Origin: Mantamonas sphyraenae STR306 | Taxonomy: Eukaryota > Protista > CRuMs | DNA length: 64,000 bases | Direction of reading: 5' to 3' | Assembly: GCA_026936335.1 (NCBI GenBank) | Contig: JAPMXV010000006.1 | Span: 310,001-374,000, forward strand | Part shown: positions 57,569 through 63,198 of the stretch, one piece after another | Numbering within the stretch: the stretch's first letter is position 1 | Layout of the letters: every line of letters begins with the position of its first letter | Notes under the pieces: model-generated | The model's input: only the letters and a program-made list of their open reading frames with translations | The model's database searches: none | Told to the model about the DNA's origin: nothing | Program-made: the position numbers and the translations under genes

Positions 57569-59542
57569 ATGTCATCATCGTCATCGTCGTCGTCATCATC
57601 TTCATCTCCTGAAGGAAGAGTTGTGCGTGCGCTGATCGTCCAGTGTGGGGAGAACGAGACAAAGGGAAAGGAAGACCCGCAGGCCAGAGCTGGCATGGCC
57701 AACAGCGTCCAACTGGTGAAGGAGTATGTGCTCAAGTCGCCCTTGCTGCGGTGGTGCAATGGCAACAAAGACATCAAGAATCTTGTCGTGTTGACTCCTG
57801 ACGAGCTGGTGGACAAGGCGAGGCTGGAGAAGGAGCTGGAATCGCTTGAGGACGCGGCCGACGAGTACAAACAGCGACTGCTCGTGGTTGTGTACCTCAT
57901 TGCGCATGGAAAGAAGAAGAAGGACTTCTTTGTGGTCAACAGTGATAATGACGAGTTTATGGAGAACGAACTGCTGGCCGCTCTGGCAGACAAGGTGACC
58001 AAGAACGGGGACAGGGAAGAGGGCGCCGACTTGCTCTACTTTCGCGACTCGTGCTACACAGGGACCGCAGGCATGGGCAACATCACCATGGATGTGCATC
58101 GTGGCTACTCGTTTGCACCCGAGGAGGGGGAAACCAACACCGTGGACTCCTACGAGAACAACCCGAACCTGGTGGTCCTCAGCGGCAGCAATCGCACCGT
58201 GAAAAGCCGCTTTGTGGACGAGACTACTGAATGGCCACTGGTCAGCAAGGCCAGTGGGTTGATCAAGGCCTGTAAAATCACGTGGGAGAACAGCGAGAAA
58301 GTTGTGGTGCATCCTGTGTCTGCGTTTTCCCTGGCGCTTGCCGTTCACTTTGGCAAGGCGTTGTCCAAGGCCGAGGAGACCGCATTCACATCGCAGGCAC
58401 CGGACAAACTGGACAGGGCGTGGTTGCATCGCAACTGGGGCCTGATGGCACGGAAGATGGCCTTGGAAGGGGCTGTGTACGCCGTGGATGCCGGGGACGG
58501 AGAAAAGAAGGTAGACGCCCGGATGCAAGTGACGTCGGTGGCCTACAACGACACTCATTTTGCGCAGTTGGCATCGATGATGGTCATCCGTGCTACCAAG
58601 AAGGGAAATGGGCGAATGGAGCTGTTGTGTGACGGTGGGGCACTGGCAGGCGTGCAAGAGGGCCAACGCTGGGCTATGTTCGAGCCATTGACAGACGTGC
58701 ACACGGGGACGCCCAGCTACACAGCCACAGTGACAGAGGTGACGGGAGTGTGCACGAGTTTGCTCGAGGTGGAGGAAACGGTGGATGAGGACGATGAAAA
58801 GGGTCTCGAGGCTGGGTGGCACCTGGTGGACCTGGACATGGCGTATCTGCATGTAGAGGATGGGTCTGTGGTGGGGCTGGAGTCGGGGCAAGGAGTGGAG
58901 AACGAAGAGAAGGCTGTGGTGAAGGGAAAGGTGACTTTGGAGGAGGACGGTGGATACCGAGTGCGCGTCACGCTGAAGGACGAGGAGTTTGACTCATCGC
59001 GGCTGTTTGTGTTGCCCAGCAAAGTGGAAGCAACGATTGCATTGCGCAAGATGGCACGGTATGCGTGGTTGCTGCGAAAGCAGGGCCCAAAGTCGATGTC
59101 CGACTTCAAGGTGACGGTGGATGACAATGATGAGGGCAAGGGACGCGAAGGGTTCTCATACATGCGCTCAGTGCAGTTGAGCACAGAAAAGAAGGGGAAA
59201 GGTGTCCAAGTGGCTGCGTTTGCGTTCTCCTGGGCGTACGGGGTGCATTGGCACACGCGTGAGGTGCATCTGCTTCAGAAGGGCAGGCCCATCACGTTTA
59301 CGTCGTACGGCATCACACCACCCTCGTCGGATGGGAACCCACTGCCACCAGAGTATGTCAAGTTTTACGTGTGGGACAGCAAAGACACGTGCAACCTGTT
59401 GTACGCCATGGAGCAGGAGGGGGTCATGCGCGGCACAGAGGAAGAGGTGTTGCAGGCGCAGAAGGCAGCAACGGAACGGGATTCTCAATCAGGAATGAGG
59501 AGTGTGACTGAGTGGGCGTGTGAGGTTGTGCAGTTGGAGTAG
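57569..59542 (+). CDS. Caspase-fold (peptidase C14/metacaspase-like) protease with C-terminal beta domains
   Basis: RALIV first strand; catalytic dyad VVYLIAHG (His ~57905) and YFRDSCYTG (Cys ~58052); VVLSGS; SAFS; then a G-ALAGV-EG module. Confidence 0.75.
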   Translation: MSSSSSSSSSSSSPEGRVVRALIVQCGENETKGKEDPQARAGMANSVQLVKEYVLKSPLLRWCNGNKDIKNLVVLTPDELVDKARLEKELESLEDAADEYKQRLLVVVYLIAHGKKKKDFFVVNSDNDEFMENELLAALADKVTKNGDREEGADLLYFRDSCYTGTAGMGNITMDVHRGYSFAPEEGETNTVDSYENNPNLVVLSGSNRTVKSRFVDETTEWPLVSKASGLIKACKITWENSEKVVVHPVSAFSLALAVHFGKALSKAEETAFTSQAPDKLDRAWLHRNWGLMARKMALEGAVYAVDAGDGEKKVDARMQVTSVAYNDTHFAQLASMMVIRATKKGNGRMELLCDGGALAGVQEGQRWAMFEPLTDVHTGTPSYTATVTEVTGVCTSLLEVEETVDEDDEKGLEAGWHLVDLDMAYLHVEDGSVVGLESGQGVENEEKAVVKGKVTLEEDGGYRVRVTLKDEEFDSSRLFVLPSKVEATIALRKMARYAWLLRKQGPKSMSDFKVTVDDNDEGKGREGFSYMRSVQLSTEKKGKGVQVAAFAFSWAYGVHWHTREVHLLQKGRPITFTSYGITPPSSDGNPLPPEYVKFYVWDSKDTCNLLYAMEQEGVMRGTEEEVLQAQKAATERDSQSGMRSVTEWACEVVQLE

Positions 59543-59641
59543 GTCCCGCGTGCAGTCGCAACCAGAGTGAAGAAGCGCTCGCGACACTGCCCCGTTGGAA
59601 GCAAACCAACAAGACACACACAGAGAGACCAAACGACACAG

Positions 59642-60295
59642 ATGACAGGAAATGGCAATTCCCGGATGCTGGCGGTGATGGTGGACGGGAGCATGACGCG
59701 CAAGGCGGTGAAACGAGCAGCAAAGGTGGCGAGCGAGGTGACGCAGCGATGTGCAGTCGGGGCGGACGTGGTGTGTTGGGTGCCGTTTGGGGCACAGGCC
59801 TTGTGTGGGATGGGGCCGGTGGAGATGGGCAAGCTGGGAGAGGGGAGGGTGAAGGAGAGGGCACGGAGGATGGGACGGGAGGCAGCGTGCGTGGCGAGAA
59901 GGAGCGGGCCGGTGGTGGCCCTGAGGCAACGACGGGGCATCATGGCATGGCACATGCGTGCACGGGGGCAAAAGACACTGCAGGTGGTGTGGCTGTGTGG
60001 CAGGAGGTATGCACAGGAGGGGGGAGAGGAGGAGGTGCTGCAGTGGACGGAGAGCAAGGGCATCCGGCTTGACATGCACGTGGTGCAGCTGGAGAAGGAG
60101 GGAGAGGAGGGAGAGGGGGTAGAGGGGGGAGAAGATGTCCATGCTCTGTGGGCTGGGTGTGAGCGATGGAAGGACGGGGAGGTGGATGACCTGGTGCTGG
60201 CACTGAAGGGCAAGGAGGAGAATGGAGCGGGAGGTGAGGCTGGTGAGGACGGTGGCGGTGGGACAGAGGAGGGAGGGGGAGAAGCAGAGAGGTGA
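59642..60295 (+). CDS. Universal stress protein (USP)-like, degenerate
   Basis: LAVMVDGS..KAV..A start and DDLVLALKG end; alpha/beta pattern. Confidence 0.5.
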   Translation: MTGNGNSRMLAVMVDGSMTRKAVKRAAKVASEVTQRCAVGADVVCWVPFGAQALCGMGPVEMGKLGEGRVKERARRMGREAACVARRSGPVVALRQRRGIMAWHMRARGQKTLQVVWLCGRRYAQEGGEEEVLQWTESKGIRLDMHVVQLEKEGEEGEGVEGGEDVHALWAGCERWKDGEVDDLVLALKGKEENGAGGEAGEDGGGGTEEGGGEAER

Positions 60296-60395: not shown

Positions 60396-63198
60396 ATGTT
60401 TGTGCGCCGTGTGGGGCCAAGAGCCGCGTCTACAGCTGTGCGTGCTACCCGTATCCGCTGCACATCAAGGCCAAATACTGTTGTGCAGCGATGTGCGCAT
60501 TCTAGCACGAAACGCACCCCCATGAGCATAACCAACTTTCGGCGCCTCCAAACCTACCCGCACACACAACTGGGGTCGGTGGAGCGTGTGACACCGTGTG
60601 TTGCATGGTCTATGGGTGGCACAGTTCATCGCTATGCTCTGTCCACAACCACAAGCGACACAAATGAGCTCTCCCGCGCTCGCGCTGTGCTTGAACGGCA
60701 GCAACGCCGTCTGGAGGAGCTCTCTTCTGAACTCAGGGATGCTCGTGGACAGTTGCGCCACTGTACACGAGAGGAACGCCCAATGCTGGAGCTTGCAGTT
60801 GCCAAGATGGAGCTGGACGTGGCGAAAGCGGAATTGGTCGTGGAGGAAAGCAAGCTCGACGTCGCCAAAGCCGAGGGAAACAACCCCCTTAGGGAGTTTT
60901 ACATACAACAGATGGTTGGCGCAGCACAGCAAGTCACTGTTGCCAGAGAGCAAGTGAACAACGCGCAGGCTCGTGAGTAATCCGCTCATCCCACTTTTTG
61001 TGTGTTTGGCATGCCTCTGCTGACCACCACATGCTTTCTCCACAGGTATGAGCATGTTACAGACACGCTCCGCACCCAAACGTACGTTTTCATCGCCCTG
61101 ATAGGGAGAGGGGCTCCACCGCTCAGCCACTCACGCGGATCTGCATCGCACAGAGGACCTGGTGTCAGTGGAGCAGTTTGCCCAGCTTCTGGACCGCGAA
61201 CCCTGCTTCGACTTGAGCAAGAAGAACACGCCGCTTGGTGATGCCGACCTCACACGGCGACTCTTGAGCATCCCGCTGCAAAACAGGAAGGCAACCGTAG
61301 AAGCGTTTCGCTCCACTGTGCATACACAGCTGCTCAACCCCAACCAACAGCGCACTGGGACGTGGCTGTACTCGCTCGCAGGCATGCCGGGCTCAGGCAA
61401 GACACGCATGCTCATGGAACTAGGAAACGTTCTGAACGACGTCACCAAAGAGGATGCTTTGGCGCACCTACACGCTGTCCCTGTCCTGCTTACCCTCAAC
61501 AACCGCAACCATCATGAGATCGAGGGGATTTGGGGCGAATTCGGCCTCGGCGTGCGCATGCTGTACGACTACGCCGTGGATAACGGTCTCGAACGCCGTC
61601 TTCTTCCCAGCGATGTCCAGCTACTGGAAGAGGCGTTGGTCCGACTGCCTGAACCCGTCGACGCAGCTAAACTGATCATCAGGCACGCGCAGAGACAGAA
61701 TGGTGGCGCCCCAGTGCTTCTGTATTTGGGGTTTGACGAAGTGCAGCGCATTGTGGACAATGACCCGTCCAAACAAAAAACGATGGAGCAGGTCATCCGC
61801 TCTGCCGCGGGCATCATGGCATCAACGAACCAGTTGCGGGGCACCCACAACGGCCAGGAGCACCCGTGTCGCGCGGTGGTCGCCGTCGCTGGGACCCGAG
61901 ATCTGTACCTGCTCGGAGCACTGCAGCGCACATCGTCGTACATCGCCTACTCGCTCGCTGTGCCCACTCTCGGTCTGGCAGAATCCCTCACGGCTGTGCT
62001 GGGCTTTGTGGGCACGTCACTGAAAGAGACACCACCGAGCCATGTTCCCGTACTCGTCAACAGCCTGCGTCGTGTGTTTGGTGTCCCGCGTGCTGTGGAG
62101 ATGCTTGCGGTGGAGTACGCCGCCAAAAAGGACTGGGATGTCGCACACATCGCCAAAGACTTGGATGCGACGCTAGAGCTCGTGAAGCTGCGCATCAACA
62201 CCAAAGAGTTTCCTGGAGACCTGGCCAAACAACTCATCCGCATGAGCCTGTTCAAGGAGCGCGTGCAGCTGACGGACGAGTACAATGGCTCAACGGTGCA
62301 GGAGCACATGGACTGTGGACTGGTGATTGTGCACGATGGCCTTGTGACTCCCATTCCTCTGCGTGTGGAGAAGGAAGCGCGGAAGAGGAGCCTCCTGCTT
62401 CGCTGGATGGACAGATTGGACCGGGTGGATCACTGGGAGGAGTACGAACGGTTTGCGCGCCACTACCACCGCCTGCGCGCACAGGCGCTGGTGGAGAGCC
62501 CACCGTCGTTCAGCTCCATGGATGGCGCGCAATGGCATCAGGGTGCGTTGTGCAGCCCGCGACTACAGCGCATCGAGTACCGCACACGTGTGACGGACTC
62601 GCAGTTGGTAGATTTGAGCAAACCATTTCCAACCAACGTCGATGAGGTGACCGCCATTGTGCGGAAGCTCGCGCAGCAGCAGCCAGACGGTCTCGAGCAC
62701 AGCATCCACATGCTCAACGCGGACAAGGCGCCGTTTGCCGACGTGATTGCTGTGCATCCTGCGCAGGATGGAGTGGTGCTGGAGTGCATCCAGTGCAAGT
62801 TCAGCGAGGACGGAGAACACGCGAGCGGCAAGGTAGACTTTGGGATGGTCAAAAAGGAGTACGACAAGGTGATGGGCACAAATTACTCGGGCTCGAACAA
62901 AAACAGCGCGTGGCAGTGTGGAAAGGGGGACACCGAAGAGTTCCTCGAGCAGATGTTTCAACCGCTCGCTGGTCCAGAGGGCAAGGTGCACGTGGTGTTT
63001 GGCCTGAGCAGCGTCAAGGCGCCCAGGGGCGTGTTGGAACACCAGCTGCTGGGCGATTTTGATGATGGCTGGACTGCAGACAAGAATGTGTATGTGGTGC
63101 ATGGGAACAACCATCGCGACTACTATGGCCAGCTGATGCAGTCGGTGATGGGGTTGCAGATGGTGGAGGCCGAGGTGCGAGGGGAGAGTGGGAAGTAA
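60396..63198 (+). CDS. Crinkler/RHS-type effector: coiled coil + P-loop NTPase + PD-(D/E)xK nuclease, 3 exons
   Basis: Introns 60973-61045 and 61082-61153 join exons in frame. Walker A AGMPGSGKT, Walker B LYLGFDE, AGT sensor, GVPRAVE; nuclease NADKAPFAD...IQCK. Confidence 0.82.

Follow-up and report, generated by a model that had tools for sequence, protein, structure and literature searches.

The 64,000-nucleotide stretch of DNA analyzed here, hereafter the window, corresponds to positions 310,001–374,000 (forward strand) of contig JAPMXV010000006.1 in the genome of the protist Mantamonas sphyraenae STR306 (assembly GCA_026936335.1). At window positions 60396–63198 it carries a gene predicted to encode a nucleoside triphosphatase (NTPase) fused to a nuclease of the restriction endonuclease (REase) fold, preceded by a leader that resembles a mitochondrial presequence. 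The gene, like all window features given below, lies on the plus strand and consists of three exons. Exon 1 (60396–60972, 577 nt) starts with the ATG at 60396, comprises the basic leader and a coiled coil, and ends at a GTGAGT donor at 60973. It is followed by intron 1 (60973–61045, 73 nt; GTGAGT...CTGAC...CACAG), whose position is kept in seven of eight paralogs, by a micro-exon of 36 nt or 12 codons (exon 2, 61046–61081), which has the same length in every copy that retains it, and by intron 2 (61082–61153, 72 nt; GTACGT...CACAG). Exon 3 (61154–63198) contains the NTPase, a helical/winged-helix region, the nuclease and a TAA stop codon. Most of this exon is taken up by an open frame of 678 codons (61162–63198), hereafter the body, which has no ATG 5′ of the Walker A motif, its first methionine being body residue 75, so that an upstream exon is required. 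Splicing in silico joins 577, 36 and 2042 nt into 885 stop-free codons, and the reading frame also survives skipping of the micro-exon. For the database searches, exons 1 and 3 were used as separate queries, the 12 codons of exon 2 being too short for searching. Residue numbers of the body (E429, D527, K546 and so on) count along the 678-codon frame, and those of the leader along the spliced protein.

The initial annotation of this locus had proposed that two canonical introns link the 678-residue frame to an upstream exon, and comparison within the genome bears this out. The family comprises nine copies, plus fragments, and the layout of two GT-AG introns around a 36-nt micro-exon recurs in the eight copies outside the window, with all spliced frames open. 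A homologous exon 1, which aligns from the same first methionine, lies upstream of all eight paralogs. Exon 1 of the paralogs varies between 652 and 880 nt and their introns between 64 and 68 nt, yet the frame is kept throughout. In L002, where the acceptor of intron 1 has been lost, the frame is maintained via skipping of the micro-exon. The nine copies thus test the gene model by comparison and support it, since they stay in frame despite their varied exon and intron lengths. The recurrence of the layout exceeds chance, and the window gene, as judged from this comparison, is an intact and selectively maintained three-exon gene for a protein of 885 residues. As a side observation, both introns of L009 (619–2697, contig 71; 65 and 64 nt) are open and in frame, so that header and body form a single open reading frame (ORF), probably by chance.

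The predicted P-loop NTPase domain occupies positions 61279–62031 (body residues ~40–290), with the Walker A motif GMPGSGKT (61381–61404) and the Walker B motif VLLYLGFDEVQ (61714–61746) both invariant across homologs. Among 17 aligned sequences, the invariant residues are G77, G79 and K80 of Walker A, R132, D192 of Walker B, E429, P490 and D527, and those nearly invariant are E193, Q195, G307, R310, N519, K546, E566 and K569. The body gave no significant match in Pfam, NCBIfam, PADLOC, PDB sequence or single-sequence word-index searches. A word-index search with the alignment of 17 sequences was blank as well, which is probably an artefact of candidate selection and carries no weight as to absence. 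Sub-threshold Pfam matches of family members pointed to AAA_16, AAA_22, ATPase_2, NACHT, NPHP3_N, NB-ARC and nSTAND, and the nearest named feature clusters of the NTPase in the ESM Atlas were of the ATPase_2 (archaeal ATPase) type, with a score of ~0.91. We therefore tentatively regard the NTPase as archaeal-ATPase/STAND-like. The domain is followed by a helical module (62032–62394) consisting of the motif G307-x-P-R310 and subsequent helices plus a β-hairpin, which a low-confidence model would tentatively place as a probable winged helix.

The C-terminal 267 residues (62395–63195, body residues 412–678) form a predicted PD-(D/E)xK nuclease of the REase fold, for which both the motif and the fold had been proposed initially. 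Its putative catalytic residues are E429, the acidic residue of the first helix (62446–62448), and D527 within the motif APFAD (62740–62742), both invariant in 17 homologs, together with the (D/E/Q)xK motif Q544-C-K546 (62791–62799), in which K546 is nearly invariant. The spacing N519...A523..D527...Q544-x-K546 is conserved in paralogs and distant homologs, and the motif reads N-x3-A-P-F-A-D...Q-C-K in most of the 17 sequences and ends on the canonical D-A-K in two distant homologs. In one paralog, L002 (1498–3477, contig 69), the lysine and the glutamine are swapped, so that I-K-C-Q stands for I-Q-C-K. An AlphaFold2 model of the domain, built with distant homologs, reached a mean predicted local distance difference test (pLDDT) score of 83.7 and a predicted template modelling (pTM) score of 0.83, and displayed an α-β-β-β-α-β core (helix 14–33, strands 103–107, 117–123 and 126–135, helix 149–160, strand 197–206). 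In an exhaustive structural alignment (VIA-align 2), almost all of the top 45 matches were REase-fold nucleases, with Z-scores from 8.7 to 4.5. The ranking was headed by AF1548 (Z 8.7), followed by MspJI, FokI, N.BspD6I, Hna, AspBHI and LlaBIII, and further matches included Card1, NucC, Can2, Cap4, Shedu, McrC, Hjc and Avs3/4. The best matches in the ESM Atlas were eukaryotic clusters of proteins of 600–700 residues, among them ‘Crinkler family protein’ clusters with template modelling (TM) scores of 0.54–0.60 (the highest, 0.60, over 200 residues), and bacterial Mrr_cat clusters came next. The model, taken together with the conserved motif, leads us to conclude that the domain has the PD-(D/E)xK nuclease fold, with these residues as its predicted active site.

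The initial annotation had further assigned the protein to the Crinkler/RHS-type (CR) effector architecture, and this assignment stands for the body only. According to a summary of Zhang et al. 2016 (PMC5289972), NTPase, helix-turn-helix and REase domains make up the commonest CR C-terminus. Proteins of this type share with the window protein the order of P-loop NTPase, helical/winged-helix module and REase-fold domain, which is found in proteins of 600–770 residues, a variable N-terminal header ahead of a conserved body, lineage-specific expansion and recombination at the boundary between header and body. Moreover, the nuclease found its closest structural counterparts in Mucoromycota ‘Crinkler family protein’ clusters of 600–625 residues. 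In contrast to CR effectors, the window protein carries neither the ubiquitin-like Crinkler header PF20147 (an Atlas cluster with this domain was matched with a TM score of 0.43) nor an LxLFLAK or HVLVxxP motif, and its own header, a presequence-like leader plus coiled coil, is none of those described. Nor does it match any named Crinkler (CRN) protein significantly in sequence, and since the organism lives freely and feeds on bacteria, one would not expect the protein to be delivered into a host. When 1.8 billion representative sequences were searched with a profile built from seven paralogs, 15 distant relatives were recovered (best E-value 4e-10), none of which is named Crinkler. They come from Mantamonas plastica, which provided the best remote homologs, from two dictyostelids and from metagenomes, and are 560–770 residues long except for three short, probably partial entries. 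These homologs bear unrelated N-terminal regions, one of them with an added HhH domain, which fits the modular pattern of header plus toxin. On these structural grounds, the body resembles a CR-type NTPase–nuclease module, with a header outside those described for such proteins.

Other known systems are less similar. The trypanosomatid RHS proteins (PF07999) likewise form multi-copy, largely subtelomeric families of P-loop NTPases that include broken copies, and a weak Atlas feature lead pointed to an RHSP cluster at a score of 0.85, which is below the trust level of the tool; in contrast to them, the window protein has no RHSP match in Pfam. RHS proteins are nuclear, and to our knowledge no mitochondrial leader has been described for them. 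Prokaryotic ATPase_2 (PF01637) and STAND NTPases associated with Mrr-like nucleases share the principle of a PD-(D/E)xK nuclease gated by an NTPase or sensor, and our nuclease model aligned to prokaryotic defence nucleases (Avs3/Avs4, Hna, Shedu and the Card1/Can2 type) at Z-scores of 5–7. The window gene differs from these systems in being eukaryotic and intron-containing and in lacking a repeat-type sensor domain, the nuclease of Avs proteins is N-terminal whereas that of the window protein is C-terminal, and all sequence similarity lies under the family thresholds. Finally, MGME1 and DNA2, REase-fold nucleases encoded in the nucleus, likewise have a presequence at the N-terminus, but they are single-copy housekeeping proteins without a comparable arrangement of NTPase and coiled coil, and searches of PDB and Pfam revealed no sequence similarity to either of them.

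The leader comprises residues 1–87 (60396–60656) and is followed by the coiled-coil region (residues 88–192; 60657–60971). As had been stated for the first ~60 residues, it is rich in R, S, T and A and devoid of acidic residues: residues 1–62 include 11 arginines, one lysine and 15 serines or threonines and neither aspartate nor glutamate, E63 being the first acidic residue. The leader begins with MFVRR and, as known presequences do, lies at the N-terminus, carries a net positive charge and could form an amphipathic helix, with a maximum hydrophobic moment of 0.73 (0.46–0.72 for real presequences of this genome). It has no hydrophobic core, which rules out a signal peptide, and a plastid transit peptide was set aside since no gene for a chlorophyll a/b-binding protein was found in the genome. 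The coiled-coil region is rich in E, R, A, L and Q, shows heptad-compatible stretches at residues ~86–117 and 130–160, and aligns with variable-length repeats of the EAKAEVAKAE type in the paralogs. Just ahead of it, at residues ~77–86, a conserved V-x-R-x-x-x-S-T-x-T block represents a possible processing site, with cleavage conceivable after R79. Exon 1 had no Pfam match at E ≤ 1 besides a chance match to BioT2. We also considered whether other effector bodies carry this header too, as happens with oomycete CRNs, and found it only in the NTPase–nuclease family plus one degraded fragment.

A related MF-x-RRV leader followed by a coiled coil is present in all eight paralogs. The paralog leaders (MFARRVSKRGG...) are ~30% identical to that of the window copy, with a common M-F-x-R-R-V start and spaced arginines, and the arginines common to both use different codons. 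This conservation bears on whether the leader is translated at all. If translation started at an internal methionine (Met43 or Met72, or Met82 in the paralogs), the product would be a cytosolic coiled-coil NTPase–nuclease. Such in-frame codons do exist, and the GC-rich non-coding frames of this genome often read as R/S/A/P-rich, as seen in control ORFs. However, the eight paralog leaders show not a single indel and a ratio of non-synonymous to synonymous polymorphism (pN/pS) of 0.54 in frame, as opposed to 1.03 and 1.20 out of frame (summed over all paralog pairs, which are not independent), from which we conclude that the leader is probably translated under relaxed constraint. Moreover, lineages of ~45% nucleotide identity have both the ATG and the MF-x-RRV start in common, their codons differing synonymously, the window copy lacks a counterpart of the paralogs' Met82, and the upstream open frame, which ends at 60295, leaves just ~100 bp before the ATG. 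A bypassed or untranslated leader therefore appears very unlikely to us.

To place the leader within the biology of this organism, we compared it to the N-termini of eight mitochondrial proteins encoded in the same genome (loci L024, L031, L045, L050, L052, L054, L055 and L058), all of which begin with M-F-[A/S/T]-[R/K]. These are IscU (MFAKSV), an MPP-like peptidase (MFSRTV), a Tim44-like protein (MFARRK) and five acyl-CoA dehydrogenases (MFTRQ, MFARV, MFSRL, MFART and MFSRI). Citrate synthase, aconitases, superoxide dismutases and two M16 peptidases were left out of the sample because their N-termini were unreadable from single exons. A scan of a further 164 kb covered 164 distinct long ORFs, of which only two start with MF-x-[R/K], and both are sampled mitochondrial genes themselves. 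M-F-[A/S/T]-[R/K] thus looks like a genome-specific presequence signature, which could aid the annotation of the mitochondrial proteome. The starts of the NTPase–nuclease family (MFVRR, MFARR) fit this signature and match the mitochondrial proteins rather than the control ORFs, so that the family bears the apparent presequence signature of the organism. The mitochondrial presequence of the initial annotation is thereby strengthened as a description of the leader, and import of the protein into mitochondria, which had been put forward along with it, is in our estimation probable.

Alternatively, the basic leader could direct the protein to the nucleus or nucleolus or serve as a tail that binds nucleic acids, in which case the family would act in the nucleus on DNA or chromatin, perhaps that of the subtelomeres. 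The leader is indeed unusually long and arginine-rich compared to the sampled presequences, the family is multi-copy and subtelomeric like the RHS genes, and characterized CRN C-termini localize to nuclei (PMC5289972). Speaking against a nuclear address are the genome-specific M-F-x-[R/K] start common to the leader and mitochondrial proteins, the lack of a classical K/R-cluster nuclear signal, the absence of acidic residues over 62 positions and the missing Pfam match to RHSP. We consider a nuclear role rather unlikely.

The genomic distribution of the family gives further indications as to its role. The genome comprises 25.06 Mb in 78 contigs with ~59% G+C and has TTAGGG repeats as telomeres at the ends of contigs; for Mantamonas sphyraenae, a FALCON assembly of 25.06 Mb in 78 contigs with 59.19% GC has been published (PMC10492846). 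The eight other copies are found at distances of 4.5–8.4 kb from telomeric contig ends, with transcription leading away from the telomere, whereas the window copy is 14.9 kb distant from the end of contig 6 and is oriented toward the telomere. The subtelomeric copies are flanked on both sides by repeat blocks of 3.9–7 kb that are ~90% identical. By their bodies, the copies fall into three groups, namely the window copy, group A (L002–L004), with ~70% identity to the window copy, and group B (L005–L009), with ~52%. Groups A and B are 86–99% identical to one another in promoter region, exon 1 and introns and 57–68% identical in their bodies, the exception being L006 with a diverged promoter stretch (~51–55% identity). 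Recombination or gene conversion has thus carried a common, homogenised 5′ module over diverged bodies, and the window copy, according to its sequence, retains an old, diverged version of this module. A conserved subtelomere architecture and a shared promoter/leader module spread over two diverged gene bodies are thus a by-product of this analysis.

Selection differs between the copies. The ratio of non-synonymous to synonymous substitution rates (dN/dS) is 0.17–0.19 between the window copy and group A, as opposed to 0.5–0.8 among recent subtelomeric copies, and the body of the window copy is under purifying selection. Two copies are broken: L004/L011 (contig 34) contains an in-frame TGA and L009/L010 (contig 71) is split across two frames. 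These data are also relevant to the idea that the protein is imported but serves as a housekeeping factor in the maintenance of mitochondrial DNA (mtDNA), acting in recombination, repair or processing of a large, gene-rich mitogenome. PD-(D/E)xK enzymes such as MGME1 and DNA2 do serve mtDNA maintenance, and the strong purifying selection on the window body would fit such a role, as would the unusually gene-rich mitogenome of M. sphyraenae (bioRxiv 10.1101/2024.01.30.577968). Yet nine copies, subtelomeric location, broken members and dN/dS values of 0.5–0.8 among recent copies are rare for housekeeping genes, and the nearest relatives are patchily distributed CR-type proteins with varied headers. 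We regard a housekeeping function as quite unlikely, since a multi-copy, subtelomeric and fast-evolving family favours a role in conflict or suicide.

The explanation that best accounts for these observations is that the window contains an intact gene for a mitochondria-addressed, CR-type NTPase–nuclease with a role in conflict or suicide, to which we assign a probability of roughly 55%. According to this explanation, the precursor would be imported into the mitochondria of the cell itself by a presequence of perhaps 60–85 residues, the coiled coil and a nucleotide-dependent assembly of the NTPase would gate the nuclease, and the nuclease would cut mtDNA. The conflict or suicide role, mtDNA as the substrate, DNA cleavage and NTP dependence are all what we infer from the features described above. 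The initial annotation had also put forward elimination of mtDNA, uniparental inheritance, cell death or an effect on an endosymbiont as roles, all of which are hypothetical; of an endosymbiont no sign was seen, although no search aimed at one was made. Several points weigh against this explanation. The protein has no significant sequence match to Pfam Crinkler (PF20147), RHSP (PF07999) or any nuclease family, and a Foldseek search of the nuclease model against PDB returned nothing at E ≤ 0.001. The individual Z-scores of the structural alignment are moderate, the argument resting on the consistency of the list of matches, and the AlphaFold2 model of the whole protein, built with seven paralogs, was poor (pLDDT 41.6), which makes the assignment of NTPase class and winged helix tentative. 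At the 5′ side, the splice junctions and the start of the gene are predicted from comparison, and the in-frame Met43 and Met72 could act as alternative starts. The leader exceeds the sampled presequences in length and basicity, its first 40 residues carrying a net charge of +10 as opposed to +3 to +6, the remote homologs of Mantamonas plastica lack such a leader, and the control set for MF-x-[R/K] starts was small and included partly spurious ORFs.

A more far-reaching version of this hypothesis, which is possible though on balance doubtful, would see in the family a subtelomeric arsenal of nuclear-encoded, NTPase-gated restriction-type nucleases that are imported into the cell's own mitochondria and destroy mtDNA when triggered, for instance by infection, by cell fusion or mating, or by mito-nuclear conflict. 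If true, this would constitute an organelle-directed Crinkler/RHS toxin module, with a presequence as its trafficking header, in a deep-branching protist whose mitochondria are among the most bacterium-like. Known CR-type modules are delivered into hosts or act in the nucleus and carry ubiquitin-like or helical headers, and a keyword-level literature search found no report of a CR-type protein headed by a mitochondrial presequence. Should import be real, the place of the header in such modular toxins can be taken by an organelle address, and the family would become a candidate for the programmed destruction of mtDNA, be it in cell suicide, control of organelle inheritance or defence. The CRuMs lineage, to which the organism belongs, bears on the reconstruction of early eukaryotes and their mitochondria.

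Apart from the intact copies, the chromosome ends hold further remnants and repeats. The fragments of the family comprise a 60-residue NTPase piece (contig 58:4191–4370) and a degraded leader with stop codons (contig 29:86360–86636). The subtelomeric repeat blocks contain internal repeats of ~1.1 kb (L035–L043 with L002–L008; ends of contigs 12, 17, 30, 34, 69, 71 and 72), and the NTPase–nuclease gene is flanked by direct repeats as part of a conserved architecture of the chromosome ends. On contig 17, a frame of 1639 codons (L038:257–5176, plus strand) that has no Pfam match begins directly after the telomere repeats, within the shared subtelomeric repeat.

Within the window, intergenic gaps of ~100 bp flank the studied gene on either side. 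Upstream of it lie a Gly/Glu-rich frame of 242 codons (59567–60295) and an ORF of 657 codons that opens with a poly-Ser run (57569–59542), both without a Pfam match. A sustained, strong positive GC skew (0.15–0.49) extends over ~28 kb upstream of the gene (32000–60000), a region in which most long ORFs are on the plus strand.

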